Positions 413-63,051 of a stretch of DNA of 64,000 nt are shown one piece after another (the first letter of the stretch is position 1; every line of letters begins with the position of its first letter). The notes below the pieces were generated by a model. The model searched no databases and was not told the DNA's origin. It saw nothing but the letters and a program-made list of their open reading frames with translations. The position numbers were made by a program, and so were the translations under genes. Source of the DNA: Ruditapes philippinarum (Eukaryota); the NCBI RefSeq assembly GCF_026571515.1, contig NW_026859993.1, positions 124,001-188,000 on the forward strand, read 5' to 3'.

Positions 413-2013
413 TCTGGTAATATTTGTAAATAATGTATCTAAACAAAATAAGTTCGTGTTTAAAATCTCTTTTTTCTCACAATAGCGCTACTGTAAGTTG
501 CTGAAGATGGATCTCTATTTAAACGTAAAGGAATTTCATTGTATTTTTATTGATATCTTCAAGTGAGGCTTAATGTATTTATCTATTTAATGATTTATTT
601 TCCCGATGGTGTCGAATGATGAATTGTTTTTAAAAATCTAACTTAACAAATGTCATTCATCCGTATTAATACGTCAATAGCATAAAAAAGTCATTATTGA
701 TTTTAGCTGTTAGAGTAAATGATGAGGTCAAACCCCTTTGTATAGAAACCAACATTTTTATCTTTGAATTGATTTCTCTTTTTGATCTGTATTATGTTTA
801 CTAATTATACCGTTCATAATATATTAATGGCAAATCTATTTTTTTGGTCACGTTTTGGCTTTCATTATGCTCAAAACAAAGCCTTTCATAGCGACTTTAA
901 ACATTAAACAACTAAACATTTGCTTATTCCCCCTTTAAAACCATTAAATTTAAACAAAAATTTTTTATCTTAGAATTTTAACAGCAACAGTAAAACATGT
1001 TAATAGGACTAATTTTAGTTTGGTAAAAAAGGTGTTATAGACTTTTTTGGGGAAAATTTAGAAAGGCTTGTATGCATGGAACCGTCATCGATTTAACATG
1101 AAGGAATATATTCAATACTATACATTAGCCACATCTTCCATGAATCATAGTCTTGTTAATAACATTTAAATTATGTTGTAATTAAATAAACGATTTTGTA
1201 ACTCATTCTGTTGCAACATTTTCAAAGAAAGGTAAATATAGTCATGCTGTTCATAACATTATTCTGTCTTGTCAATTAGTTATGAAAATAATAAAGACTT
1301 CATTAATTAACTCTGTATTTCATGTTTATATAAATAGAGTGTTTTATAAACATAGTTCTCAATTATCCATTGCTGATCGGAAAATATAGCTTAAATGGAT
1401 TTTGGGTATTCTTTAGAAATTCTGTTTTTTCCTCTATCTCTATGTTAAAATAATAATGACAAAAGTGTGATTTGTTTTGTAGTTTAATATTTATCTCTTA
1501 TAAATATTACATTCACATAAAAAAATGATTTTAAAAAAGTTAAACGACATAGGTTTTACTTTATAGCTTATATGTATCATAAACGTCCCATACAAAATGA
1601 GATTATTGATTATAATACAAGATCCAAACAGTGTTCAATGAGTGCATGAAACCCGACTCAAAATGCATTTTTTTTTAATTTCCATCATTTTTTATTTAGT
1701 AGTGAGCCATTGGTTATGATGTGATATTCACCGGAAGAATTGTCAACTGACTGAGGCGATAGCTACCCGCAGTGATTATGCTGAGCAAGCGTTCGCTTAA
1801 CAACCGTTTGGACCATTTACATCATATAATAATGGTCAATTTGTATCAACACTTGACTATAAATGAAACCATATTCTGTTAAATACATGTTTAAAATTGA
1901 TAGTTTTACGAGATAGATGGAATCAAAAACCTTATTATGAGAAAATCAAAATTAGCCAGTTGAACATCTTTGAAAATATGCTAGAATATGCATTCATTGA
2001 CCGTGCTGTTGCT

Positions 2014-13250: not shown

Positions 13251-14537
13251 CTAGGATTTTGCAATGCCGATAAATATGATCATATTCATTACTGACATAA
13301 ACAAGAAGGCAAAAAAGGCAATCCAGTCAATCATGTAACTTATCTTCTTCCACGTTATTGGGTTGTTCTCTTCATCTATTTTTCTCAGCTCATCAACACT
13401 TCCCTTTCTCTTATATTTAGCTGCGTTTTCCTCAATTTTCTTACTTTTAGTCGAGCCAATCGCGCCTTTTGGTTTTTCCTCAGCGGTTTTGTCTGGGTGA
13501 ATTCTGCTGCGGGTACATATCAAAAACCGGTAAACTGACTTGAGCCATCCCGGGACGATAACCTTGTCGTCTCTTCTGTATAGACGCATGTTTACGATGG
13601 TGACACACACTATCAATGCACTCATAATCAAGTCAATCATTAACTTGTAGGAAATAAGAGGTACCGGTCGTGAAGTTTTAGGCAACAAATCATTGACAAT
13701 TGTCATGTACACGGCAATAGCAAGAAGTGTCGTAATACAGTATCCAATACGTTCTCCCGATTCTGGCACAAGAAGAAACACAAGAACATTTAATAAGCTT
13801 AGAATGAATATGGGCACCATGATATTTATCACAGCAAACGTTGCGTCCCTTTTCAAATGCATTGTGAACTTTATTTCAGACACACTACCAGTTAATATTA
13901 CCGGTTCAACTTCTGATCCCGTAACATCCCATAAAGAGTCACCAATATATTCAGTTAAATTGATTTTTTGAAATCCAGCATGAAAGGTCACCTCATAGCT
14001 TCTGTAACCTATGGACGTAAAATTTGTGTCGCAACTTTGAGTGTCAAATGGAAATTTCTTAGCGTTAACATTACACGTGCTTTCTATGAGACCCCCTGGT
14101 ATCCATTCCATTGTACCATTTTGGTCAACACGAACTCTGTCAGATGATTTCCTAAATATTGACCCTGTTGAAGAGGGACTTGATAATTCAATTTCCGGTA
14201 CCCATACATCATCGTGGGACACTGTAATCTCTTCGATGCCGCCATTGGTAGTTTTGTCCCAAAGTAACTTTTCATCTGTCCATCGAAGTGTCAACGCTGC
14301 AACAAAAGAAAACTTTCCAGCCGCTTCGTCGAACTCTCGGATTGACTTTACATACATATACACGTATACGTCTATAGTCGAGCTTTGATCAGTTACTGGT
14401 CGAACAGTTTTGTTATAGCCACCGAACAATGACTTATGTAGTTCCTTCATCTGAGCGATTGTTGCAGCGTCTATAAGCTGTATTATTATGAAGAACCTTA
14501 AGGCTCGGAAAACAGAAATATATCTTTTAAACACCAT
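13251..14537 (-). CDS. Cys-loop ligand-gated ion channel (nAChR-like) subunit, copy C1; intact, single coding exon
   Basis: 428-aa ORF with signal peptide, WVPE loop A, Cys-loop CNVNAKKFPFDTQSC, M1-M3 (ESGERIGYCITTLLAIAVY), short intracellular loop and M4. Confidence 0.95.
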   Translation of the reverse strand: MVFKRYISVFRALRFFIIIQLIDAATIAQMKELHKSLFGGYNKTVRPVTDQSSTIDVYVYMYVKSIREFDEAAGKFSFVAALTLRWTDEKLLWDKTTNGGIEEITVSHDDVWVPEIELSSPSSTGSIFRKSSDRVRVDQNGTMEWIPGGLIESTCNVNAKKFPFDTQSCDTNFTSIGYRSYEVTFHAGFQKINLTEYIGDSLWDVTGSEVEPVILTGSVSEIKFTMHLKRDATFAVINIMVPIFILSLLNVLVFLLVPESGERIGYCITTLLAIAVYMTIVNDLLPKTSRPVPLISYKLMIDLIMSALIVCVTIVNMRLYRRDDKVIVPGWLKSVYRFLICTRSRIHPDKTAEEKPKGAIGSTKSKKIEENAAKYKRKGSVDELRKIDEENNPITWKKISYMIDWIAFFAFLFMSVMNMIIFIGIAKS

Positions 14538-17500
14538 TCTCTAAAAGTAAGATTGACGAAATGAAACAGAATATTAAACTTTAAATTTCTTTTGCTCTAT
14601 CACAATAATAGTACCATCACTGATGACAGAGTTCCATTTAAACTACAAAAAAGGTGTATTTCCTTTAATAGGCTAGTATTTTTTAGGGGCGCTCCAATCA
14701 TTAGCACATGTAATGCATTGGTCGAAATTGCAGTGCGGTGTAACGTTTCATATTAGATCTAACCATACAAAAGAAAATATTCATTTTAATACACAATTGC
14801 TTTACAATCAACTGTCCATATTCAATAAATCATTTTGAAGATTAAAATATGGTTACATAATATGCTAATTTATTTGCAAATGATATGTAAATTAGACTAC
14901 ATTTGTATGGCTGCTATTTTTGCCAAAAGTTCATCCTTGTTGATCATAGTTGAGCAGTTTGTTTACGTACAAATTACAGTCGTATTTCTTGGTATGTAAA
15001 CCCCAGTGTTGCAGCCTTGAATTGAGTTTGTCGATTAAACATTGTAAACATGTATTTCAACAAAATACATTTTATTAAACGACAAAATATTAACTAGATT
15101 TCTGAAAGTAGCAATACCAAGTGCTTACCATAACATACGTAATACTAATTGTTCGTGCATACGCCGACAAAACAATATTTACTTTCTTTGGTCTACATTG
15201 TCAAATTAACATGATTCGGATTAGCATAATCCAATTGAACACATTTGCAATAAACGATAAACAAGCTCCGCCAATTTTCCTACCACTACGTCATCGTAAA
15301 TAAACGTATTAATCCGCTCATTTTAGTTTTAGGTATTTACCGTCAACAGCTGGTTCTCTTAATCACAAGGAAGCAAAGAAGCAACAACACGCACCGACGT
15401 AGTTTTCATTTCAGGAGCCTTTAAGGTGTTTGCAAATCATGACAGTTATTCACCAAACATAATTCACTTGCATTCTATGCCTTTATTCAATCAAGTCAAC
15501 ATCTGATAAAGATTTTGCTTCGACCAGATATTAATACAAACCAAATTCTGACTGTTGTCTTTCCCTGTTGTAGCATTTACTATTACATTAGTAACCTATA
15601 TACTATAGCGCATGACTTGACAAGAAAATGATTTTAACAATTATAAAATTGAAATCAAAGTTGTATGTAGCAACTACCTCTTCGTGTTTAACATTTTATT
15701 TTTACCATACTGTATAGATATATATTTTCCTAATTTACATTATTTTTAATAATAATATTTAAATGACTCCCAAGGTAAGTATGTTGATTATCAATTTATG
15801 TATACCTTGGTTATCTTATCTCTAAGAAAGTCATCACTTACAAAAATTAATAAATATTCTATGTAGTATTACTTGTGCATAAAATAATTCAGAAAGTCTA
15901 GGTAACAGCTATTGACAGCATGTATACACAGATCTTAACGCTGTCATTGATTGAGGAAATTGCATAAAAAGGGGTTCGCTGATGAGCTTAAGCTACATCA
16001 GCTTGCATATAATAATTTTTTTTCATAATAAAAGCCATAATCTACGTTGGCACAGAGGCAGTTACTATGTCGTTGCCATAACTTAGTCAAAATTTGATGT
16101 CTGATTAATGGAGCTTGGACAGTGACCTTCTAATACGATCCGTAAGACATGTATCAAGTTTAAAGTGAATATCTCCAGTATTTTTTAAAGACTAATCTTT
16201 CTTGTGAAGCTTTAACAGCGCAGGAATAAGTTTAAACATTCATATTTATATAAAGTGAAATGTTTGGTTAATTAATTCGTGTGCATGACGAAATAGTATT
16301 TTGTGCGCACGAGATAAATAAAAACACATGTCACCTATGTGACACCGTATAAATCAGATCCCTTGACTCAAAATATTTCCTAATGGATGTTAACAGAGAT
16401 GCTAGGATATACTGAATATGTAATTCAAAATCAAACTGTGACAAAAACACAAGTTTTTGGTTATACCACAGGATTATCAATAGTAAACTTTGTGTAATTC
16501 CACGTTATGCACTTTGTCAAAAATTTTGATTTTTTTTCTACAACCTAATATAGTCCTTCAAAGAAAGAAGGCACGGACTTACTGGTCTCATTATTTATGT
16601 TGACAAAAGATAAATCCATGTATTGCATTCTCGTATTGTCTGCTGAATGTAAAACAAAAGAATACGAATATTTCTGTGAACGAATTCAACAATTCCGTTA
16701 TATTTTATCTTAACCACTTTTTTATTACATGAATATCTTTGCTAGAATACGTTTAAACAAAATAAGAAGACTTTTTTAAGGTCAACTATTATGGAGTTGA
16801 TATATGTCTTGAGAAGGAAAAACTATATTTGATGAAACTCACTGAGACGTGACATTATTATCTCACCTAGAAATCCAAAACCTTCAGAATGTACATGGAA
16901 CGCACCATTTTGTTTTATGGACATTTCCATATTGCTATCATGAAGTTTAACTTTTAGTTTAGAGTTAAACACAGTAATTGTGATCATTCATCAAAAGAAA
17001 CAAGGTTTATAAAAAAGGGCAAATATGTTATTTCTCATCACACATTGTATCTGAACTACAATATTAATGTTGTGATGACTGACATTTAGTACACACCCAC
17101 GAGGTGGAGCTATTTAGATAGTTGTTTTTAATATGTTATGTATATCATGTATTGTATAGAGAGTTACAGTGTATGTATGAATGTAAAACAATAAAGCTGT
17201 ATTATAAGCTATGGTGTTGATTTTATCAATCCTCAAATAAACAGAATGTTACAAATGTCATTTTGCGTTTTAAATAATTTCTTCGTTTTCTGGAAATAGG
17301 TAGTGTTCCCCTTTCAAATTGGACGAGTCTACTTGTTTGTTGCATGAGAATCTATTTCAAGGTTTAATTGTCCAGTCAGTTATATAGCCCGTTTCAAGTA
17401 AAACGTATTTACATAGTGATCTAGCGTGAGTGAACGACATAGTTCGTCATTGTTCATGAATTTATCGGTTACGGCAATCAAGTCGGCATCATACATGTAT

Positions 17501-20379: not shown

Positions 20380-20957
20380 ATAAAATCTGGAAACAAAGTG
20401 ATCCCTCGGAAGCATTAACCACAACAAAATTACAAGAGAATTGCATTGAGTATGTACATGAGGGATTATGAATACGTGCAACATCTCTCACGTCCCCTAG
20501 AACCGGCTTGAATGGTACTCAATTCTCAACACTTAATAGTGCTGGCATCAATGATCCCGAAGGACCAGAAAAATATAACAACACTGAAGTGAAGTACGGG
20601 GCAACTTTTTACAACTGCCACACAGCACTTGACACCTGCTGCTGTGAAGTATAAAATCTGGAAACAAAATGATCCCTCGGAAGCATTAACCACAACAAAA
20701 TTACAAGAGAATTGCAGACTCGGTTTGATTGAGTCTGTACATGAAGGATAATGAATACGTGCAACATCCCTCACGCCCCCTAGCACCGGCTTGAGTGGTA
20801 CTCAATTCTCAACACTTAATAGTGCTGGCATCAATGATCCCGAAGGACCAGAAAAATATAACAACACTGAAGTGAAGTACGGGGCAACTTTTTACAGCTG
20901 CCACACAACACTTGACATCTGCAGTTGTGAAGTTTAAAAATCTGGAAACAAAGTGAT
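20380..20957. repeat. Tandem repeat, unit about 270-285 bp, about 2.1 copies
   Basis: Unit starts aaaatctggaaacaaa at about 20381, 20653 and 20937. A related fragment lies at 37396-37502. Confidence 0.85.
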
Positions 20958-22510
20958 ACAAGTCTTGTAAGTCTTGCTTGTATTGGAATTACTTTCCTTA
21001 CCAGGTAGGCATCAGTGAAAGCATTATTTTTAATTAATATCTGACCCCTCTCTCATAGATAGTGCATATAATAAGTATAATTATGCGAATTTAAACGATC
21101 TACAAAACATCCGGAATGATTTACAATAGTACTTGACCTAAATAGAAAATGACCTGTGCGCAGTCCTGAATATTAGGTAAGGTGTCTGTAAACGAGTTTT
21201 TTTATTGCGCGGAGCTTCTCATTTGATGCATTGCAGCAACATTTATACTTGTAGACAAAAAGTCTTTATTTAGAATAGTTCTGTTCTATTTAATCGATAA
21301 TGTTTGTCAATGTGTGCTTTTTTTAATTACAGTCTAATCTTTGTCCAGAATTGGTCTTTAAAAGAAGTGTATCTGTATTTGAGTTATTCGTTTCATAAAA
21401 TATCTGGCCAGATTCTCTGCATTATCACAGAAAACATGAATCATATAAATAAATGAATTCAGGTACCCCCACTTGATGATATTCAATAAGTGTCTAATAG
21501 ATTATATAATAATCGATGTGATTTCAATTGGTATAATTTTTATATTTTGCATATTTTGCATATTAATCAAGTATTTATAAATATAACAGTCTACCAACTG
21601 CGTAGATGTTCGTGTTAGAATATTGAGTTCACTTACCGAAACGACAGATTCATGTAGGAACACATATATTTCACAATGTTCCATTTTTTTTTGAATTACT
21701 AACCCCATTGTTTACTGTCAAATAAATAAAAAGGTTTCAAAAACTTAGAAATAACATAAATTAGTTAACGAGGTTTATTTCGGCCGAGTATCTTGTTTAA
21801 AAAAAAATTCTGGCAGTCATATGAGATATTTATGGCATCTATGATAAAATGCATTGCTGTCAAGGGTCTGTCGCGGCGTATTGGAACTGTCAGACAGTAT
21901 TCTGATATATTCAGATTTTCATTTTTTTTTTGCGAAATCTGGTAGTTTATTATACTAATGTAGACTAATGATTGTGATTACAAAAGGTTTTGTCGACACT
22001 TGTCCGAAGGAAGAGATTAAGAAAATCCCCTTTTCATCTTGATATTTATAACGTGATTGTAAGTTCTTTGTGAAATTCTCATAAATTTTATTTTACCACA
22101 ATACCTGCTATATAACAACAATATATAATCAATAAGTCTTGTATAAGAATGCCACCTTATCTCATGAATGTTTTGAGAGACATCGGTGTATATATAACCT
22201 TTCTTCCTTATAAGTCCTTAATTTTTGTATTTTAACATATGATCATATTGATTACTGACACAACAGTACAAATACAAAAAGCAATAAAGTCGATCAAATA
22301 ACTTATTTTTTTCCATTTAATAAGACCATCGTCTCTATCTGCTTTTACCAGTTCGTAAGAACTTTTCTTTGCTTATCATTTAGATGAATTTTCTTGATTA
22401 ACATTTCTTTCCTTTATATTGTTTACACGTTCTTGTTTGCTTTCCCCGGTGTCACCTGGTCAGTACAGATTAAAACTCTAAATACAGACTTCAGACAAGT
22501 TGGTACACTA

Positions 22511-22879
22511 TGTGCGTGTGTTTAGATTTGTTTATACTGGGTGCCGGTTCCGATATGTCCCATACTATTACGTCGCTGGTCGTAGAGCCTGCAACGGAAG
22601 ACTTAGTTCGTCTGCAACGTCGCCGATCGTAAGGCCGCAACGGAGGTCTTCTCATGCCGTCTTTCGTCATAGATATTCTCTAGGACCCAGTTCCTCGCTT
22701 CCTAAACGCAGTAGACAATATAGAGGAAAGGCACCTCTTGCGGGAGCAGCAGCTCTCTTTAGGGCCAAACCCTTCGCCGTTGGTTAGGTCACACCAGCTA
22801 AGTGACCTAACTAAGTCACCCATCTGGTGTGACCTATGCCTTGCGAGCGACGTGCACGCCGCGAAGGGAAATCGGAAGA
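22511..22879 (-). mobile_element. 369-bp GC-rich non-coding retroelement with an 11-bp TSD and a 5' HDV-like ribozyme fold
   Basis: Flanked by ttggtacacta (22500-22510) and ttggtacccta (22880-22890), a motif present once in intact paralogs. AC-rich 3' tail on the minus strand. Confidence 0.85.
22770..22878 (-). ncRNA. Candidate HDV-like (CPEB3-type) self-cleaving ribozyme
   Basis: P1 CUUCCGA/UCGCAAG (1 mismatch), P2 CCCUUCGC/GCGAAGGG, P3 GCG/CGC, L3 UGCACGU, P1.1 GC/GC, 13-bp P4 UAGGUCACACCAG/CUGGUGUGACCUA, J4/2 ACCAA. Confidence 0.75.
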
Positions 22880-23717
22880 TTGGTACCCTATTGTTATCGT
22901 CTTTACTATATAGTCGCTTGTTTATGATGGTGACAAAAACTATTAGGGCGCAAATGAGCAAATCTTTAAAAATTTTATAAAAAATAGTCCGTAGCCAATC
23001 AATACAAGACGTTCACAGATTTGTTGACTTTAACGCCCGTGCCGTCTATGATCTTTACAGTTTTCTATTCAGTTAGTAGTTATTTTGAATTCAGTTTTAA
23101 AAATCCCACGGTATTGTCCAGATTGAAAGATATCGTTGACTAGGTTAACATTATGTCTTAACAATGCTGATGTGAAGTCTTAAAGTTGAGTTCTTAAATG
23201 AGAACTAACAATTAAAAAGGCAGTAAACAATAACAATAAGGCTGAAATCTGTTTAGTTATCTAAAGTGTCATATAATTGTAATTATCATTAAACGTTTTG
23301 AATATCTTATTACACAGGATCTCTTTCATAATGCAGTAATATTTCAGAACTTATATTTGTCAATTAATATTACCTTAATATTACTGAAATGCATATTTTA
23401 GTTCTTATTCAAAAGTTTTTTTTTACCAGCTATATACGGAAGTCAATTAAATTATACATAGATATTTTAATCTTTCAAAGAGTTTATTATCAAATTTCCT
23501 ATTTATCGAAAATTCGACTCTCTTTGTAAAGGAATATAAGTATTTAAATAGCAATTAATTTTAATGAAATAAACTCCAAATTCAATCAACGACAATCCCT
23601 AGTAGATATGATTGTTAAATTTTATCCTGTAAAATTGGAAATGACAACCTTTAATTTAGCCACTATTACTCTTCTTAATTTATTGCCTTAAAAGACTGAA
23701 TTGGTTTAATTTTACAC

Positions 23718-23815: not shown

Positions 23816-24310
23816 TACGAGGATTGATCAAAAAGTTCTCGGCCCGATGTACTTCCGGTAGTCAGAGAACCTATCTAATGGTCTTATTTCTCAATATAAA
23901 CGCCCTCTATATCAATGCACTTTGCCCACCTATGCTCAAACTTGTTAAATTCTTCAAAGGTCTCTATTTTGGTCATAAAAGAACTCATTGACCTCATCCA
24001 TGACACCTTCATTGCTTCCAAAACATCTACCATGAAGCTTGGTTTGCAGGTTCGGAAACATGTAGAAGTCAGAGGGGGCCAAGTCCGGTAAGTATGGGGG
24101 TCAGGGAGGAAGAATTTTAAAGATGCAGTCAGTTGCAGCAGTTATCGCAACTTGGCATGTGTGAGCTGGCGCATTGTCGTGTAGGAGCAGAACGCCTTGA
24201 CTCAGTTTGCCCCTCGTTTTACGCACGATTTCTTGATGCAGACGTCTCAATTCGTCCGCATAGTACGTGCCGTTTATGGTACGACCTTGCTCAAGATGGT
24301 CAATCATGAT
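23816..24310 (-). mobile_element. Mariner (DD34D) transposon, 3' fragment
   Basis: TINGTYY...LLHDNAPAH followed by PYLPDLAPSDFYMF after a stop codon. TA plus cgaggattgatcaaaaagtt terminal repeat at 23816. Confidence 0.88.
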
Positions 24311-24399
24311 TATTCCCTGACTACCCGAACCAGAAAGCGGTTGAACCGGGTGATGCTCTCCGTATCGGACACAGGAAAGTATACCTTTTGTAGTGTCAA

Positions 24400-24860
24400 A
24401 GTTATGTCACAGACAAAGTTCAAAGTATAAAAATGTACAGGGCCATAACTCCAAAATGAGGCAAGGCAGATTATGGTTCTTTTGGAATGCACATCTTCCC
24501 TATGAGATCTATCTACCTACAAAGTGTCTTTTTCATAACTATTATACTTTTAAAACTATGTCTTGGACAGTGTTCAAAGTGTACAAATGAACAATAGGCA
24601 ATAACTCCAAAATAAAGAAAGGAAGAGTTTAGGCTCTTTTGCACTGCACTTAATTTAATTTTATTTAATTTAGTGAGATCAATCTACGTACAAATTTTCA
24701 TGTTGATACCTCTCATGGTTTCAGAGATATGTCCTGGACATAGTTCAAAGTAAAAAAATGAACAAAGGGCGATAACTCTAAAATTTGGAAAGGCAGAGTT
24801 ATGGTTCTTTTGCACTGAACTTTAATTATATGAGATCTATCTGCCTATAAAGTTCCATGT
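24400..24860. repeat. Degenerate tandem repeat of about 155-170 bp, about 3 copies (HINE-type central repeat)
   Basis: ggc.ataactc.aaaa recurs at about 24441, 24597 and 24768, each followed by gagatc.atct. Confidence 0.7.
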
Positions 24861-25439
24861 TGTCGTGCTACGCCCTCGTGATATAATTCCTCGCATCCAA
24901 ACTCCAAACAGTTATGTTATAAAATCACCGATTTGGATATATTATTTCGATTCTAACACATCAACACATAAATGCTGCCGTACCTGATATTAACCTAAAC
25001 TTCGCCTGATTGTTTCCGTATATATTTTGAAATTTTTGAGCGCGTCACATTCCTAGTAGTTACGTCACGTGTATACTGATTACGTCACAGGTCTAAATAT
25101 AGACCGTCAAACTGTGATTTTGTTGCATAATAACACACACTTCACACTTGGGGAAAAATGCGGATGGTGTTAGAATAACTATTAATAAATCGTGACGTCA
25201 CTATTAATCCGGTTTTTACAGAAACATTACTTTCATTTTGACGTCATGTAAACAAAGGAATCATATAAATAACTCGAATGTAACATTAATAGGAAATGAA
25301 ATATAATGTTAAGAAATATTTATACTGTTTGTACATGTATTTGCTAATTATTTGAGTAAAACCAATTAAAAAGAAATATTTAATGTTGCAAATTTGTTGT
25401 AAATATTTTACAATCCTGACTCGGTACCAGCCTGACAAA

Positions 25440-35090: not shown

Positions 35091-36361
35091 TTACGACGTT
35101 GCCATTCCCAAAAAAATAATCACATTCAGAAGTGACAAATTATACTTGTGCAAAGGGCAGTCAAGTCAACCATATAGCTTATTTTCGTCCAAGTAATAAG
35201 ATCGCCTTCGTCCATTTTAAGCTCGTGAATAGTTTCCTTTTCAGTGTATCCAGATTTATTTTCCAGTATTTCCTTACTTTTGTTTGAATTGGTCTCAATT
35301 ACTGGCTCAATTTCACCGTTTTCGACTCGTTGATTTTTGCGGCAGGTACAGGTTAAAACTCGATACACAACCTTGAGCCACGCAGGGACAAGATAACTGT
35401 TGTCCCTGCTATACAAACGCATGTTAAGGATGGTGACAAATACTATCATTGCGCTTATAAAAAAGTCTATCATTAACTTGTAAGAAATAAGCGGTACTGA
35501 CTGGGAAGTTTGGGGCAATAATTTATTGACAATGGTCATGTACACAGCAATAGCGAGAAGTGTTGTGATACAGTATCCAATACGTTCTCCCGATTCTGGC
35601 ACGAGAAGAAACACGAGAACATTTAACATGCTCAGAATTAATATTGGCATTATAATGTTTATCACAGCAAACGTTGCATCTCTTTTCAAATTTATAGTGA
35701 ACGTTATTTCAGACTCATTTCCAGATGATGTTAGCTTCGCGTTAACTTTTGATCCGGTGACAGCCCATAAGGTGTGAGGAGTATAAACATTAAAATAGAC
35801 GTACGGCGATTCAGCTTGAAGATTCACTTCATGGCTCTTGTAACCTAAGGAAGTAAAACTGGTGTCGCAACTCTGAGTGTCGAACGGAAAGTTTTTAGCG
35901 TTAACACTACACGTGCTTTCAATGAGACCCCCAGGCATCCATTCCATTTGACCAAATTGGTCACCACGAATTATGTCAGATGATTTTCCTAATGTTGACC
36001 CTTTTGAAGAAGGACTCGACAATGTCAGTTCAGGTACCCATACATCATTGAACGACACTGTAATCTGTTCGATGCCACCATTGACACTTGGGTCCCATTG
36101 TAACTTTTCATCTGTCCATGAAAGTACCAACGCTGCGACAAAGGAAAACTTTTCATTCACTTCATCAAAATCCCTAATTGACTTAACTGACATATCTATT
36201 TTAACTTCAATTGCCGTGTTTTGGTTCGTTATTGGTCGCACATTTTTGTTATAACCAGTGAATAATGACGTATGTAGAGTTTCCATTTCCGTTATTGTAG
36301 CAGCGTTGATTAGTACTATTACAAAATGTAATATTATCAAGAAACTTAGTGTCCCCAACAT
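35091..36361 (-). CDS. nAChR-like subunit E; 1-bp frameshift inside M4 (real lesion or assembly error)
   Basis: 411-aa ORF 35126..36361 with full extracellular domain, Cys-loop and M1-M3. The paralog-like end SLLNVIIFFGMATS* lies in another frame, stopping at 35091. Confidence 0.85.
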
Positions 36362-37502
36362 AATAGTTTTTCCCTTGACCGCAATTTTTTAGTAACTTTT
36401 TTTAAAATTATTTAATAACTTTGCCAAAAAATAAAAGCTAATTTCAACTTTTAATTTGCCCTGATTTTCATTTAATAACTCCACTGTTACAGAAATGATT
36501 AGACGTAGTATAATTTATGGCTATGGCTAATGGTCATTTATTTGAATAACGGTCAGAGTTCATATAGGTTTAATTCTTCGCGTGATTTAAAGAGACGCAA
36601 TTACTCGTTTTATTTGTTAGATTCAGGTTTAAAGAGATCAGGTTCAAATAAGGGTTAAAATAATTTTTTTGATTTCAATCGAAAGATTTTATTGATCTTT
36701 AGCAGCTTTTTAAACATGCAGTTGCATAATTATAATAAAGGAATCAAATATTTCTGATAGGCAACAACAATTGATTTATCACAGACGGGTTGTAAGAATT
36801 TTAAAATACCATGGAGATTTTTACTGATTAACCTGTATAGTCAAACATCTAAGTAAAGTCCAAAAGGAAGACAAAACATCGTCTTTACTATTAATTGATG
36901 AATGATTGTCAAAGTGTGATCTTTATTTACAGTGTTTATTCGGAAGTCTGTTTTAAGTTATTCGTTTCATAAAACATTTGGTCAGATACGATGAAGTATC
37001 ATAGAAAATTTAAGGTAACGTCATAAATGAATATCGATATTTGTCTATTTATAATACACATCGCATTTTCACGAACTCTTCCGTCGAATATCGGATAATG
37101 ACCTCGGACACCAATCGCATCTTCTCGGCCCTTTCTGGCAAACTTCGCATTATGAAGGATTGTCGATGTGAAAAATACTAACATGATTTGTTTTTGTGTT
37201 ATTTGCGGATAAAATGTAGAAAATAACCAGATGTGTTTTTATTTAGTTTTTTTACAGTGATATGGAATATAAAATCAGGGGTATCTTTATCTGCAATAAA
37301 ATGCATAGCTGTCATGGCTCATTGGCGCGGTTTGGAACTGTTATTTTAAAGTGTAAAAATATAAAAATACTATCAGTGCTCTTATAAACAAAAAAACTGG
37401 AAACAAAGTGATCCCTCGGAAGCATTAGTCAAAACAAAATTACATGGAAAATGCAGACTCGGTTTGATTGAGTCTTTACTTGGGGATAATGAATAGGTGC
37501 AA

Positions 37503-40683: not shown

Positions 40684-41985
40684 CTACGAGGTTGTCATTC
40701 CAATAAATATGATCATATTGATCACTGAGAAAAGCAAACAAGTAAAAAGAGCAATCCAGTCGATCATGTAACTTATTCTTTTCCATGTTATAAGACCATC
40801 GTCCTTCTCTGAATGTTCAAGGTCGTTGGAGATTTTATTTTCTTTATGTTTAGATGGATTTTCCTGCATTGCACTTCTTTCATTTAAATTGTTTTCACTT
40901 TCTGCTTTGATTCCCGCGGTGTCGTCTGGATAAATTTTTCTGCCGGTACAAAATAAAAATCTGTATACGAATTTTAGCAGCTTTGGTACACTATTATTAT
41001 CGTCTTTACTATATAGTCGCATGTTTACGATGGTAACAAAAACTATCATCGCGCTTGTGAGCAAATCAATCATCAACTTGTAGGAAATAAGCGGTACTGG
41101 CTGTGAAGTCTGGGGCAGAAAGTCATTGACAATGGTCATGTAAACAGCAATTGCGAGAAGTGTCGTAATGCAGTACCCTATACGTTCTCCCGCTTCTGGC
41201 ACCAAAATAAATACAAGAACATTTAATAAGCTTAGTACAGATATGGGCATTATTATGTTAATCACCGCGAAAGTTGCATCCCTTTTCAAGTGTAAAGTGA
41301 ATGTTATTTCAACCTCATGATCAGATCCTAAAAGCGTCGTTTTTACTTCTGATCCAGTGACATCCCATAATGCATGAGGAGAATATACATTAAACATAAC
41401 GTATGGAACTCCAGCTACAAGATTTACTTCATTGCTCTTGTACCCAAGGGACACAAATTTAGTATCGCAACTCTGAGTATCAAAGGGAAATTTCTTAGCG
41501 TTAACGTTGCACGTGCTTTCAATGAGACCCGCTGGCATCCACTCAATTTCACCCCAATCATTAACACGGATTCTGTCTGATGGTTTCCCTATTGTTGTTC
41601 CTGTTGAAGAAAGACTAGACAAAGTCAGTTCTGGTACCCATACGTCATCGTAAGATACTGTTATTTGCTCGATTCCACCATTTAGCTTTTTGTCCCAACG
41701 TAACTTTTCATCCATCCAGTGAAGTTGCAAGGCTGCAACAAAAGAAAACTTTTCATGCACTTCGTCGAATTCTTTTATAGACTTTATATACATAAATACT
41801 TTTACGTCTATGGTCAAGCTTTGATCCGTTATTGGACGCACATTTTTGTTATAGCCAGTGAATAACGACATATGAAGATTCTCCATTTCTGTGATATTAG
41901 CTGCGTTTATAAGCGATATAACTAAATATAATACTATCAAGTATCTGAAGGCTTGGAAAACACCAGTATATCCTTCAAAAGCCAT
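40684..41985 (-). CDS. Cys-loop ligand-gated ion channel (nAChR-like) subunit, copy A2; intact, single coding exon
   Basis: 433-aa ORF with signal peptide, Cys-loop CNVNAKKFPFDTQSC, EAGERIGYCITTLL M2 and four TM helices. Confidence 0.95.
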   Translation of the reverse strand: MAFEGYTGVFQAFRYLIVLYLVISLINAANITEMENLHMSLFTGYNKNVRPITDQSLTIDVKVFMYIKSIKEFDEVHEKFSFVAALQLHWMDEKLRWDKKLNGGIEQITVSYDDVWVPELTLSSLSSTGTTIGKPSDRIRVNDWGEIEWMPAGLIESTCNVNAKKFPFDTQSCDTKFVSLGYKSNEVNLVAGVPYVMFNVYSPHALWDVTGSEVKTTLLGSDHEVEITFTLHLKRDATFAVINIIMPISVLSLLNVLVFILVPEAGERIGYCITTLLAIAVYMTIVNDFLPQTSQPVPLISYKLMIDLLTSAMIVFVTIVNMRLYSKDDNNSVPKLLKFVYRFLFCTGRKIYPDDTAGIKAESENNLNERSAMQENPSKHKENKISNDLEHSEKDDGLITWKRISYMIDWIALFTCLLFSVINMIIFIGMTTS

Positions 41986-43615
41986 TCTGGTAATATTTGT
42001 AAATAATGTATCTAAACCAAAATAAGTTCGTGTTTAAAATCTCTTTTTTCTCACAATAGCGCTATAGTTGCTGAAGATGGATCTCTATTTAAACGTAAAG
42101 TAATTTCATTGTATTTTATTGATATCTTCAAGTGAGGCTTAATGATTTATTTCCCGATGGTGTCGAATGATGAATTGTTTTTAAAAATCTAACTTAACAA
42201 ATGTCATTCATCCGTATTAATACGTCAATGGCATAAAAAAGTCGTTATTGATTTTAGCTGTAAGAGTAAACGATGAGGTTAAACCCCATTGTATAGAAAC
42301 CAACATTTTTATCTTTGATTTTTTTTTCTCTTTTTCATCTGTATTATGTTTACTAATTATACCGTTCATAATATATTAATGGCAAATCTATTATTTTTGG
42401 TCATGTTTTGGTTTTCATTATGCTCAATAGACGTAACAGCCTTTCATGTTGGACTTAAACATTAATCAGACTAATCGCACTAATTTAAAACAAAATTTAT
42501 GATCTATAGAATGTCAAATCCGCATACACTGGAGATTGCAATATGTCAATTTGTAGCACAATGTAAACATAGAGTAAAAATACATTAATAGAAAGATGAC
42601 GAATGAAATTTACATACTTTGTCGGAAATATTTTTGACAGGCTTCAAGCATGGAACCGTCAACGATTTAACATAAAGGAATGTAAACAATGCTATACATT
42701 AACCACATCTTCCATGAATCACAGTCTTGTTAATAACATTTAAAATTAGGTTATAATTAAATCAAGAATTTTATAACTCAATCTGTGATTTGCAACATTT
42801 TCAAAGACAGGTACATATAGCCATGCTGTTCATACTATGATTCTGTCTTTTGTCTGTTAGTAATCAGAATAATAAAGACTTCATTAATTTACTCTGTACT
42901 TCATGTTTATATTAAAAAAATACGAATACACGTGTTTTATAAACATGATTCTAAATTACCCAGTGCTAATCAAGAAAAGTAGAGGAAAATAGAATTTAAA
43001 TGGACTTTTAGGTATTCTTTAGGAATTCTTTTGTTCTCTATCACTATGTTAAAATAATAATGACAAAAGTGTGATTTGTTTTGAAGTTTATTATTTATCT
43101 CTTATGAATATTACATTCACACAAAAAAAAAATGATTTGAAAAATGTTAAACGACATAGGTTTAACTTTATAGGTTATATGTATCATAAACGTCCCATAC
43201 AAAATGCGATTATTGATTATAATACAAGATCCAGGCAGTGTTCAATGACTGCATGAAACCCGACTCAAAATGCATTTTTTAAAATTTCCACCATTGTTTA
43301 TTTAGTAGTGAGCCATTGGTTATGATATGATATTCACCGGAAGAATTGTCAACTGACTGAGGCGATAGCTACCCGCAGTGATTATGTTTAACCATGCGTT
43401 CGCTCAACTACAGTTTAGACCAATGAGATTTCAGATATATTTAGATCATATGATAATGGTCAATATTTGTTACAACACTTGACTATAAATAAAACCATAT
43501 TCGGTTAAAGACATATTTGAAATGAATAGTTTTTACGAGATAGATGGCATTAAAAAGCTTATTGAACACATTCGAAAAGATGCTAAAATATTCATTCATT
43601 GACCGTTCTGTTGTT

Positions 43616-44941
43616 TTACGACGTTGCCATTCCCAGAAAAATGATCATATTCATCACTGTCAAAAATATACATGTAAACAGGGCGATCCAGTCAACCATA
43701 TAACTTATTTGTTTCCATGTTATGGGATCGTCTTTTCTCTCTTGTTTATTTTTCAGCTCGCCAGAACAGTCCTTTGTTTTACATTTAGATGCGTTTTCTT
43801 GCATTACAGTAGTACCGGTACCTTTAAATTTGATTTCACTTCTTTGTTTGACTTCTTCGGTTTCGTCTGGATGAGTCTTTCTGCCAGTACAGGTTAAAAA
43901 CCGATATATAGACTTCAGCCAATTTGGTACACTATTGTTATCGTCTTTATTATATAGTCGCATGTTTATGATGGTGACAAAAACTATCAGGGCGCTGATA
44001 AGCAAATCAATCATCAACTTGTAGGAAATGAGCGGTACCGGCTGTGAAGTTTGGGGCAGTAAATCATTGACAATGGTCATGTAAACAGCAATTGCGAGAA
44101 GTGTCGTAATGCAGTACCCTATACGTTCGCCCGATTCTGGAACAAGAAGAAACACGAGAACATTTAATAAGCTTAGTATTAATATAGGCATTATTATGTT
44201 AACCACTGCAAAAACTGCATCCCTTTTCAACTGTATAGTGAATGTTATTTCAGACTCATTTCCAGATCCTAATATCACCGTTTTAACTTCTGATGCAGTT
44301 ATATCCCATAAGGCATGAGGAGAGTATACATTTAACATAACGTTCGGAAATCCAGCTTGAAGATTCACTTCATTACTCTTGTAACCGAGAGAAGTAAAGC
44401 TAGTGTCACAACTCTGAATATCAAATGGAAATTTCTGAGCGTTAACGCTACATGTGCTTTCAATGAGACCCGCTGGCATCCACTCCATTTCACCCTCTTC
44501 ATTAACACGGATTCTGTCAGAAGATTTGCCTATTGTTGATCCTTTTGAGGAAGGACTTGACAAAGTCAGTTCTGGTACCCATACGTCATCGTAGGACACA
44601 GTTATTTGCTCGATACCGCCATTAATACTTTTGTCCCAAAGTAACTTTTCGTCCATCCATATAAACTGCAATGCAGCTACAAAGGAAAACTTTTCATCGA
44701 CTTCGTCGAATTCCCTAATTGACTTTATATACATAAAAATTGTAACATCTATAGCCGAGTTTTGGTCCGTTATTGGTCGGACATTTTTGTTATAACCAGT
44801 GAATAATGACGTATGAAGATTCTCCATTTCCGTGATTGTTGCTGCATTCATAACTCCTATTATAAAATACAAAGTTATCAAATATCTATGTACACCAAAC
44901 ACTGTTATCTCTCCTCTAAATTCCATTTTTGTAAAATTCAT
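43616..44941 (-). CDS. Cys-loop ligand-gated ion channel (nAChR-like) subunit, copy B2; intact, single coding exon
   Basis: 441-aa ORF with Cys-loop CSVNAQKFPFDIQSC and M1-M4. Confidence 0.95.
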   Translation of the reverse strand: MNFTKMEFRGEITVFGVHRYLITLYFIIGVMNAATITEMENLHTSLFTGYNKNVRPITDQNSAIDVTIFMYIKSIREFDEVDEKFSFVAALQFIWMDEKLLWDKSINGGIEQITVSYDDVWVPELTLSSPSSKGSTIGKSSDRIRVNEEGEMEWMPAGLIESTCSVNAQKFPFDIQSCDTSFTSLGYKSNEVNLQAGFPNVMLNVYSPHALWDITASEVKTVILGSGNESEITFTIQLKRDAVFAVVNIIMPILILSLLNVLVFLLVPESGERIGYCITTLLAIAVYMTIVNDLLPQTSQPVPLISYKLMIDLLISALIVFVTIINMRLYNKDDNNSVPNWLKSIYRFLTCTGRKTHPDETEEVKQRSEIKFKGTGTTVMQENASKCKTKDCSGELKNKQERKDDPITWKQISYMVDWIALFTCIFLTVMNMIIFLGMATS

Positions 44942-45734
44942 CTGAAAAAAGTCGTAAACAAAATTTACAATTTAAATATCCCTTTGTTATTTTTACAAAG
45001 ACCCATATAAACTGAAAAGATCAGATAAGGTGTTTTTTACAATATATGTCAGGGTCACTTATTCATAATAAGACATTACACAGATTTCGATGAATGGTTT
45101 AACGCTCCGATACAATGATGCGTATCAGTTTACAAATATAGAGTCAAAAATGAGCTCAAACTTATAATTGATTTAGATCGAAAGTATCAAAATGTATATG
45201 AAAAGCGAGAATCTTTAAAGTCTACCATAGAATAGGTATTTATAGAAGTTTATAAACATGTGTATTGCATTTTTCTGTTTATGTACACGTACTACTGTAA
45301 ATATCATTCTCTTAAAAAGAATTATATAAATTTCTTCCATTCACGGGAATTTTCGATTTTATATGATACTATAAATCATTTTCGGTTCTTCTTTCGAAAA
45401 GGTATTATATCTGATACATAATCTTTGGAAAATGAACCGTGAATAAAACAAGTTAAATATTCTTGTCTTTCCCGACACAGGATAGTAAATTGAGGTTTTA
45501 AATTAGAGAAATATTAAGTTTCAACCGTCAGTAATGAAGATGTTTAACTTTGATACATCACTACCGCATCAGCTTATTAATGATAAACATATTTCCCTTG
45601 TTGATAAACTTTTACACAGGGGTAAAGTTATCTCGAAAAAAAGTTTTACACAACGGTTGTCTTTCTTGCATGTATTGCTCAAAAGGTTTTCTTTACAAAC
45701 TTTATTGTAAAACATAATTCCGTGGGGACCTGCG

Positions 45735-61353: not shown

Positions 61354-62550
61354 TTACAAGTTCGTTTTCTTTTTGTTAAGTTTAGCGTTTTCTTGTTTGC
61401 AGATAATGTAGAATTTCTCCCATAGGCACAAGTTGCATCGGTCGGAGGCTGGGTTGTAGGGTGAGGCTTGTTTTAAGATATTCCATGTTATGTTAAAGTC
61501 GATGTTTTCTTCTTTGAGTTCCCAGATATATTTACTTAATTCAGTGCTGTTTTTAAGCTTAGGATTTCTAAATGATGCTTTGTGGTTTGTAAATCGGGTT
61601 TTAAAGGTATTTTCTGTTAATCCTACATAAGTTTGTTTAGGCTTGTCGTCGTTTGTTTCCACTGTAGCTCTATATACAACCGATTTCACCAAGCATCGTC
61701 CTGACATGGGGCAATCTATTATTTTCCTACAATTGCATGTTTTAGGCTGATTTTTTACTATTTCTTTGGAAAGAATAGCTTTGTTATGTCCGTCGATTAT
61801 GTTTTTTATATTGTTCATGCAACTATAACTTAATTTGACTGTGTTTCTATTGAATATTTTGTGTAGCAAGTGTTCCTTGGGAAATTCTTCGTCTAGTATT
61901 TTCAGAAACGTTTTTCCAATGTTGGTTTCTACATTTTTACTATATGGTGGGTTATACCAGATTATATTTCTGCTTCTGTTTTTGCGATTCTTGGTACCGT
62001 TGTCTGTCTTTTCTTCATTTGAGTATTTAAGTTGGTGTTTATATCCACTATTTGTAATAGACCTTTGGTAGATTGGTGTTGCTATGTCAAAAGATTCTTG
62101 GTCATATGATATTTCGCATAGACGTTTGTTAATGCCTATGGGTATGTTCTTGATGATATTCGGTGGGTGGTTCGATTCGGTATGCACATATAATGGTGTG
62201 TTGTTCGGTTTGTTGTATGGAACATGTTTGCCATTCTTCAGGTTGAGTGTTACGTCCAAAAAGTTCACGATTTTTTTGTTGGATTCAATTGTAATCTTCA
62301 GGCCGTGTTTAGAAAAGATAGAGCACAGGTCTTTTTTAATGTTTTCAATTTCACGTGGTTTCGCATCAGATACACCTAGACCATCATCTCGATATAGCCC
62401 AAAGTTTTTTCCATGTTTCTGTGTTATTTCGTTAAGTAAATATAATCCAACTAACTCACAAGTTTCTGCTCCATCGAAGCTTCCCATAGTTACGTCAAAT
62501 AGATTGGATGTCGCTTTCTTGCCCCATGGTTCACCTGACTTGTGAAATAG
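61354..62550 (-). CDS. Penelope-like RT (C-terminal half) plus GIY-YIG endonuclease, partial
   Basis: FDVTMGSFDGAETCELVG, GLYRDDGL, NFLDV, CNCRKIIDCPMSGRC linker and VVY...YVGLT...FKTRFTNH. The inverted copy gives the likely true end NKRNELVTTCRHSRKYLLSNFKK*. Confidence 0.9.
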   Translation of the reverse strand, partial: LFHKSGEPWGKKATSNLFDVTMGSFDGAETCELVGLYLLNEITQKHGKNFGLYRDDGLGVSDAKPREIENIKKDLCSIFSKHGLKITIESNKKIVNFLDVTLNLKNGKHVPYNKPNNTPLYVHTESNHPPNIIKNIPIGINKRLCEISYDQESFDIATPIYQRSITNSGYKHQLKYSNEEKTDNGTKNRKNRSRNIIWYNPPYSKNVETNIGKTFLKILDEEFPKEHLLHKIFNRNTVKLSYSCMNNIKNIIDGHNKAILSKEIVKNQPKTCNCRKIIDCPMSGRCLVKSVVYRATVETNDDKPKQTYVGLTENTFKTRFTNHKASFRNPKLKNSTELSKYIWELKEENIDFNITWNILKQASPYNPASDRCNLCLWEKFYIICKQENAKLNKKKTNL

Positions 62551-63051
62551 ATTGACTAATAGATTGCCCCATGTCAGGACGATGCTTGGTGAAATCGGTT
62601 GTATATAGAGCTACAGTGGAAACAAAGACGACAAGCCTAAACAAACTTATGTAGGATTAACAGAAAATACCTTTAAAACCCGATTTACAAACCACAAAGC
62701 ATCATTTAGAAATCCTAAGCTTAAAAACAGCACTGAATTAAGTAAATATATCTGGGAACTCAAAGAAGAAAACATCGACTTTAACATAACATGGAATATC
62801 TTAAAACAAGCCTCACCCTACAACCCAGCCTCCGACCGATGCAACTTGTGCCTATGGGAGAAATTCTACATTATCTGCAAACAACAAAACGCTAAACTTA
62901 ACAAAAGAAACGAACTTGTAACAACCTGCAGACATTCCAGGAAATATCTATTAAGCAACTTTAAAAAATGAACAGTATTAATATAGTTACGCCCCTTTAT
63001 TGAGAAACCACCATTTACACTTCATAGTTACGTCCCTTTATTGAGAACTAC

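Follow-up and report, generated by a model that had tools for sequence, protein, structure and literature searches.

What is a 369-bp insert, with no recognizable tRNA head and no coding capacity, doing inside a receptor gene fragment of Ruditapes philippinarum, and why does its first part look like a self-cutting RNA? The insert occupies positions 22511-22879 (minus strand) of a 64,000-nucleotide stretch of contig NW_026859993.1, hereafter the window. A sequence-only reading had described it as a short retroelement flanked by an 11-bp target-site duplication (TSD), whose first 110 nt satisfy the nested double pseudoknot of the hepatitis-delta virus (HDV) ribozyme, with a predicted cleavage site within 1 nt of the 5' boundary. 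From this, it had inferred a non-autonomous family that self-cleaves out of host transcripts instead of using a Pol III promoter. The observation is confirmed, and the interpretation is supported by the computational evidence, although self-cleavage itself remains an inference.

The first question is whether the sequence is truly an insertion. The flanks belong to the 3' fragment (about residues 315-444; 22238-22985, minus strand) of an intronless Cys-loop receptor paralogue, split by the insert and in the same orientation as the element. The left flank (22238-22509) matches residues 347-444 of the intact 451-aa paralogue at 43619-44971, which carries the Neur_chan_LBD and Neur_chan_memb domains, and the right flank (22881-22985) matches residues 315-349. 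A Pfam search of the short ORFs beside the insert found nothing, so that the receptor identity rests on the comparison with the paralogues; the nearest protein clusters are mostly molluscan. In the DNA alignments, the left flank aligns up to 43934 and the right flank from 43924, an overlap of 11 bases. Two intact paralogues in the window, at 43924-43934 and at about 2322-2332, read straight through a single TAGTGTACCAA, while at the insert this 11-mer stands on both sides: unchanged downstream (22500-22510) and with one T>G change upstream (22880-22890, TAGGGTACCAA). The insert, its borders and the duplication are thus confirmed by paralogous empty sites.

The surroundings hold other features of interest. 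The paralogues belong to an array of intronless ORFs on the minus strand (2017-2982, 13254-14540, 35129-36388, 40687-42033, 43619-44971 and 61357-62610), five of which match the receptor fragment hosting the insert; 61357-62610 gave no tblastn match and is included only for its size and strand. Upstream of the fragment, 20380-20957 holds a local direct duplication of about 300 bp at 91-95% identity. At 24101-24307 (minus strand), 1.2 kb from the insert, a 68-aa ORF has a partial mariner/Tc1-type transposase DDE match (PF01359, E = 4e-5, just under the cut-off), a DNA-transposon remnant, and next to it (24381-24862) units of about 150 bp are repeated in tandem at 70-78% identity.

Is the insert a singleton or a member of a family? 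A BLAST search of the 1.4-Gb assembly with the 369 bases returned at least 259 candidates, and all 40 that were scored are full length at 84-90% identity. A 21-base tail motif occurs 214 times with two or fewer mismatches, against 2 for the reversed control, and a covariance model of the first 122 columns returned at least 150 hits, all with E ≤ 3e-22. The family is dispersed and counts about 214-260 copies, of which 105 loci were retrieved. The window copy is about 10% from the family majority sequence, which is that of a short non-coding cellular retroposon, not of a virus or provirus, and was used only for coordinates and statistics. The family has the hallmarks of a non-autonomous non-LTR retroelement: TSDs of variable sequence, 5'-truncated and internally deleted copies, no ORF, and a simple-repeat tail, which is (AC)n, (AAC)n or, in an older subfamily, (ATC)n. 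A conserved UAUAAAUAAAAC box, which contains AAUAAA, lies just before the variable tail (element nt about 350-364, window about 22525-22540), and it may be a polyadenylation signal or part of the reverse-transcriptase recognition site; in the window copy, the 3' end (22511-22540) is a decayed AAUAAA-like box followed by a short (AC)-rich tail. Two copies (loci L002 and L025) carry long (CA)n/(CG)n microsatellites grown from the element's tail, so the family seeds microsatellites. At another locus, L066:640-1300 (G000:C6759), two copies stand in tandem on the same strand: one ending at element nt 238 is followed after about 46 nt by a full copy, and both are preceded by the same six bases, TAAATA. 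A classical SINE is not supported, because ARAGORN found no tRNA and Rfam found no small-RNA head over the whole element.

What, then, is at the 5' end? The predicted HDV-like fold spans 22770-22878, that is element nt 1-109 counting C22878 as +1, with the predicted cleavage between 22879 and 22878; base 22879 is an extra, non-family base between the TSD and +1. P1 pairs nt 1-7 (22872-22878, CUUCCGA) with nt 33-39 (22840-22846, UCGCAAG), with a C-C mismatch at 22875/22843, and is followed by J1/2 (nt 8-10, 22869-22871). P2 pairs nt 11-19 (22860-22868, CCCUUCGCG) with nt 100 and 102-109 (C22779, and GCGAAGGG at 22777-22770), leaving G101 (G22778) bulged. P3, GCG/CGC, pairs nt 20-22 (22859-22857) with nt 30-32 (22849-22847), and encloses L3, UGCACGU (nt 23-29, 22856-22850), whose G22855 and C22854 pair with 22839-22838 to give the two pairs of P1.1, G-C and C-G (nt 24-25 with 40-41). 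P4 (22785-22836) is a perfect 13-bp stem, nt 43-55 with 82-94 (22836-22824/22797-22785), plus a 10-bp distal hairpin, with an A.A apposition of nt 42 and 95. J4/2 (nt 96-99, 22783-22780) is C-C-A-A, where C22783 is the candidate catalytic cytosine; the C and both A are invariant in 28 copies. The 7-nt L3 has U at position 1 and G at position 6, as expected for this class (the conserved L3 G is described in PMC3774820).

The sequence-only reading had attached three caveats to this fold: C at +1, the C-C mismatch in P1 and the bulge in P2. The first two shrink. In the family majority, P1 is a perfect 7-bp CUUCCGA/UCGGAAG, so that the mismatch is a private G>C change at 22843, and it is the only defect of this copy in the paired or core positions. 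C-C mismatches in P1 have been linked to loss of in vitro activity in other HDV-like ribozymes (PMC3774820), so this copy is probably impaired; in contrast, 20 of 82 sampled copies keep every pair and every core base. C at +1 is the family state, is paired Watson-Crick, and has a precedent in L1Tc. As for the bulge, with it P2 abuts P3 and J4/2 is four bases long, as in HDV. It remains that +1 is C or A in a Watson-Crick pair rather than the usual G of a G.U wobble, a feature which is common but not universal.

Could the resemblance be due to chance, an ordinary retroposon whose GC-rich palindromic 5' end happens to fit the HDV descriptor? A strict descriptor was anchored within the first three bases (7/7 P1; 3-bp P3 with a 6-8-nt loop; 2-bp P1.1; P2 of 6 bp or more next to P3; C-N-R-A before the P2 3' strand), and it was met by 3 of 60,000 mononucleotide shuffles (5e-5), whereas a relaxed version was met by 395 (0.66%). 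Two findings anticipated as potentially fatal, namely 5' ends that do not coincide with P1 and a lack of covariation among copies, were looked for, and both came out in favor of the ribozyme. With regard to the 5' ends, 52 of 68 full-length copies have a recognizable TSD of 8-17 bp, mostly 10-13; in 35 of these it abuts the first base of P1, in 10 there is one extra base, and in 7 there are two to four. The extra bases are not predominantly G, and the upstream flanks share nothing. In the subfamily that begins with A, the duplications show that A is truly the first base.

With regard to covariation, 94-95% of cells are paired, the value being 95.2% in the alignment of 82 copies, against 30-43% when partners are slid. 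P1 occurs as CUUCCGA/UCGGAAG, CCUCCGA/UCGGAGG and ACUCCGA/UCGGAGU. Among the 82 copies, P1 pair 1 is C-G in 68 and A-U in 6, pair 2 is U-A in 53 and C-G in 19, and pair 4 is C-G in 68, U-G in 5 and U-A in 1; the P2 closing pair is C-G in 47, U-A in 22 and U-G in 7. P1 thus survives two independent compensatory double changes, and P2 one. The cells are not independent, however, as they descend from about three events, and one could argue that neutral changes hitch-hiked within subfamilies. A rough Poisson calculation with 12 high-frequency variant sites in 116 positions expects 0.15-0.2 compensated pairs against 3 seen (p of 5e-4 to 1.5e-3), and 0.02-0.035 in P1 against 2 seen (p of 3e-4 to 6e-4). 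P3, L3, P1.1, basal P4 and the C-C-A-A junction do not vary at subfamily level; P3, P1.1 and P4 never covary, and are thus neither supported nor refuted in this way, although the P1.1 pairs are possible in 92-94% of copies. The second CUUCC, at nt 8-12, was considered as an alternative partner for the P1 3' strand and rejected, because the A1/U39 subfamily breaks that pairing and keeps complementarity only with nt 1-7.

A competing fold deserves mention. RNAalifold, which cannot draw pseudoknots, prefers a nested fold with a 6-bp palindromic hairpin, GCGGCG/CGUCGC, which also tolerates the two changes counted as the P2 covariation; its covariation term is about 0, and it does not explain the P1 changes.

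The 5' region is also under selection. The two main subfamilies differ at 26 positions, none of them in nt 1-116 and all beyond nt 119 (Fisher p = 4e-5). Variants shared by four or more copies occupy 24 of 116 ribozyme positions against 106 of 248 elsewhere (p = 4e-5), and the mean departure from the majority sequence is 5.2% in nt 1-116 and 11.2% in the rest. Within the fold, every variant carried by eight or more copies is either compensated or a wobble; the unpaired J1/2 linker also varies, with 7 copies at nt 8, and 6 and 4 at nt 9. Taken with the exact start of the fold at the TSD-defined first base, these data make chance resemblance very unlikely.

Does the structure cleave? The only indirect evidence for site-specific self-scission giving a 5'-OH product is that copy 5' ends fall at +1. 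Covariation shows pairing, not catalysis, and an alternative is that the 5' domain is a selected but non-catalytic RNA structure, a P1/P2 pseudoknot plus a long hairpin. It might be a binding site for the protein of the partner LINE, a stability element or part of an internal promoter, and the exact 5' ends would then come from transcription initiation at +1. There are precedents: the R2 protein binds a pseudoknot in its own 5' UTR, and Pr77 of L1Tc is both promoter and ribozyme (PMC6765202; PMC3185411). RNA-seq of the same species does not help to decide. Reads from four runs were aligned to an intact copy, and no pile-up of molecule ends was seen at +1, nor any depletion of border-crossing reads. 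One run gave a depth of 160-230 over the element and about 0 in the flanks, with 43 reads crossing the 5' border and 47 the 3' border into heterogeneous flanks; since both orientations are equal, and the libraries look unstranded or orientation-balanced, most of the signal looks like passive read-through of many copies and neither supports nor excludes cleavage. In run X2, a further break was seen at L013:1653-1659 (element nt about 212-218; the locus L013 has an intact copy at 1755-1870, minus strand): 69 reads fit only from 1653 upward and 83 only up to 1659, more than at the true borders, and each group runs on into heterogeneous AT-rich sequence. There is no GT/AG at this break, and no truncation hot spot there among the genomic copies sampled.

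Curated models do not recognize the fold either. Rfam searches of 6 kb, 301 nt and 151 nt, the last at E ≤ 10, returned no model of the HDV family but only hairpin-like miRNA noise from the long P4, and genome-wide searches with the CPEB3 and drz-Agam-2-2 models (RF00622 and RF01788) found nothing. These models are lineage-specific and ignore the pseudoknot, so this is weak evidence. Against a non-catalytic structure, the fold matches the HDV-like plan in every element, including parts with no obvious role in a plain binding site: the 3-bp P3 with its 7-nt L3, the 2-bp P1.1, and a C-N-A-A junction exactly between P4 and P2. Moreover, the L3/P3 core differs from that of Cpeb3 by one base, and nothing upstream of +1 is conserved, so that a promoter would have to be wholly internal. 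A non-catalytic structure is therefore considered unlikely, while a real HDV-like ribozyme heading a non-autonomous non-LTR family is the probable reading.

In this view, a source copy would be transcribed as part of a longer host or read-through transcript. The ribozyme would fold from sequence lying entirely downstream of the cut and cleave immediately 5' of C/A+1, releasing an RNA whose first base is the first base of P1. A LINE reverse transcriptase supplied in trans would recognize the 3' stem and microsatellite-type tail and copy the RNA by target-primed reverse transcription (TPRT), leaving a 10-13-bp duplication. Because P1 is inside the element, every new full-length copy would carry a complete ribozyme. 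The analysis itself establishes the family membership, the exact 5' ends, the duplications, and the selection for P1 and P2 pairing and for the ribozyme region, whereas catalysis, the dependence on read-through transcription and the identity of the LINE are inferred.

Which LINE might be the partner? Microsatellite-type tails are typical of RTE-like LINEs (reference 123 in PMC6765202), which suggests, by inference, an RTE-like partner. The element could also be an internally deleted LINE, its ribozyme and tail being simply the two ends of a full-length element still present in the genome; this would refine the above view rather than oppose catalysis, and it is how the R2 SIDEs and NARTc arose (PMC3414825; PMC3185411). 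This possibility is tentative at best. All of about 110 ribozyme-bearing places inspected continue into the short element, the apparent exceptions being internal deletions or broken copies. Fifteen tail-only places are 5'-truncated short copies with no ORF of 120 aa or more upstream, and the count of tails (214) is about the count of short elements. No LINE sharing the ribozyme or the tail was found among these places; a Pfam RVT_1 search indicates at least 17,700 reverse-transcriptase candidates in the genome, many with long open frames, of which 150 hits were scored.

How does this family compare with what is known? HDV-like ribozymes process the 5' ends of R2, L1Tc and other non-LTR elements (PMC6765202; PMC3774820). 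In L1Tc of Trypanosoma cruzi and its non-autonomous derivative NARTc, the ribozyme (L1TcRz/Pr77) occupies the first bases of a dispersed, non-site-specific retroelement, including a non-coding short derivative, with cleavage at +1. There, too, +1 is C (the -10 primers end in CAG|CCCTG; PMC3185411), and the TSDs are about 12 bp (PMC6765202). However, there is no sequence similarity, NARTc shares its first 77 nt with a known LINE whereas no LINE with this ribozyme was found here, and the host is a protist with polycistronic transcription; Pr77 is also a demonstrated promoter. The R2 SIDEs and R2/R1 hybrid SIDEs of Drosophila are likewise short non-coding elements made of a 5' HDV-like ribozyme joined to a LINE 3' end and mobilized in trans by TPRT (PMC3414825), but they insert only in rDNA, are rare, are co-transcribed by Pol I, and their P1 often uses 28S sequence upstream of the element. 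The present family is dispersed, has about 250 copies, and has P1 wholly inside the element.

For the HDV-like ribozymes of autonomous LINEs (2011; reference 114 in PMC6765202), the proposed role is the same, namely 5' processing of co-transcribed non-LTR elements, and RTE-type elements also carry microsatellite tails. That work reportedly associated HDV-like ribozymes with LINEs and hammerheads with SINEs, so that a short element with an HDV-like head runs against that generalization. The CPEB3 ribozyme has a similar P3-L3-P3' core, G-UUCACGU-CGC in mouse against GCG-UGCACGU-CGC here, at a similar distance from the cut (18 against 20 nt; PMC10919898), but it is a single-copy intronic ribozyme of mammals, not a mobile element, and has G at +1. 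Finally, the twister-variant ribozymes at the 5' end of Perere-3 in Schistosoma mansoni follow the same logic, with TSDs adjacent to the cleavage site taken as the footprint of in vivo cleavage (PMC8501958), although the ribozyme class is different and the TSD itself contributes to P1. Full-text searches found no report, within the literature covered, of an HDV-like ribozyme on a short element in molluscs, and two metagenome pattern scans for relatives in other species gave no hits and then one GC-rich, bacterial-looking chance hit.

A bolder reading is possible, although less likely than not: a distinct class of animal short interspersed element whose only head is an HDV-like ribozyme with a Watson-Crick +1 pair. 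It would be maintained independently of any LINE 5' end, would rely on host read-through transcription plus self-cleavage instead of a Pol III promoter, and may be widespread in molluscs.

The family offers a clean, testable metazoan example in which a short non-coding retroelement would solve the 5'-end problem with a ribozyme rather than a Pol III promoter, with about 250 dated copies, three natural P1 variants and 20 or more intact copies. It extends ribozyme-terminated non-autonomous elements, on present evidence, from trypanosomes and fly rDNA to a dispersed family in a probable mollusc, and it adds natural C-G and A-U first pairs to the catalogue of HDV-like P1 helices. For the host, every sense-oriented intact copy inside a gene is also a potential self-cleavage site in the pre-mRNA.
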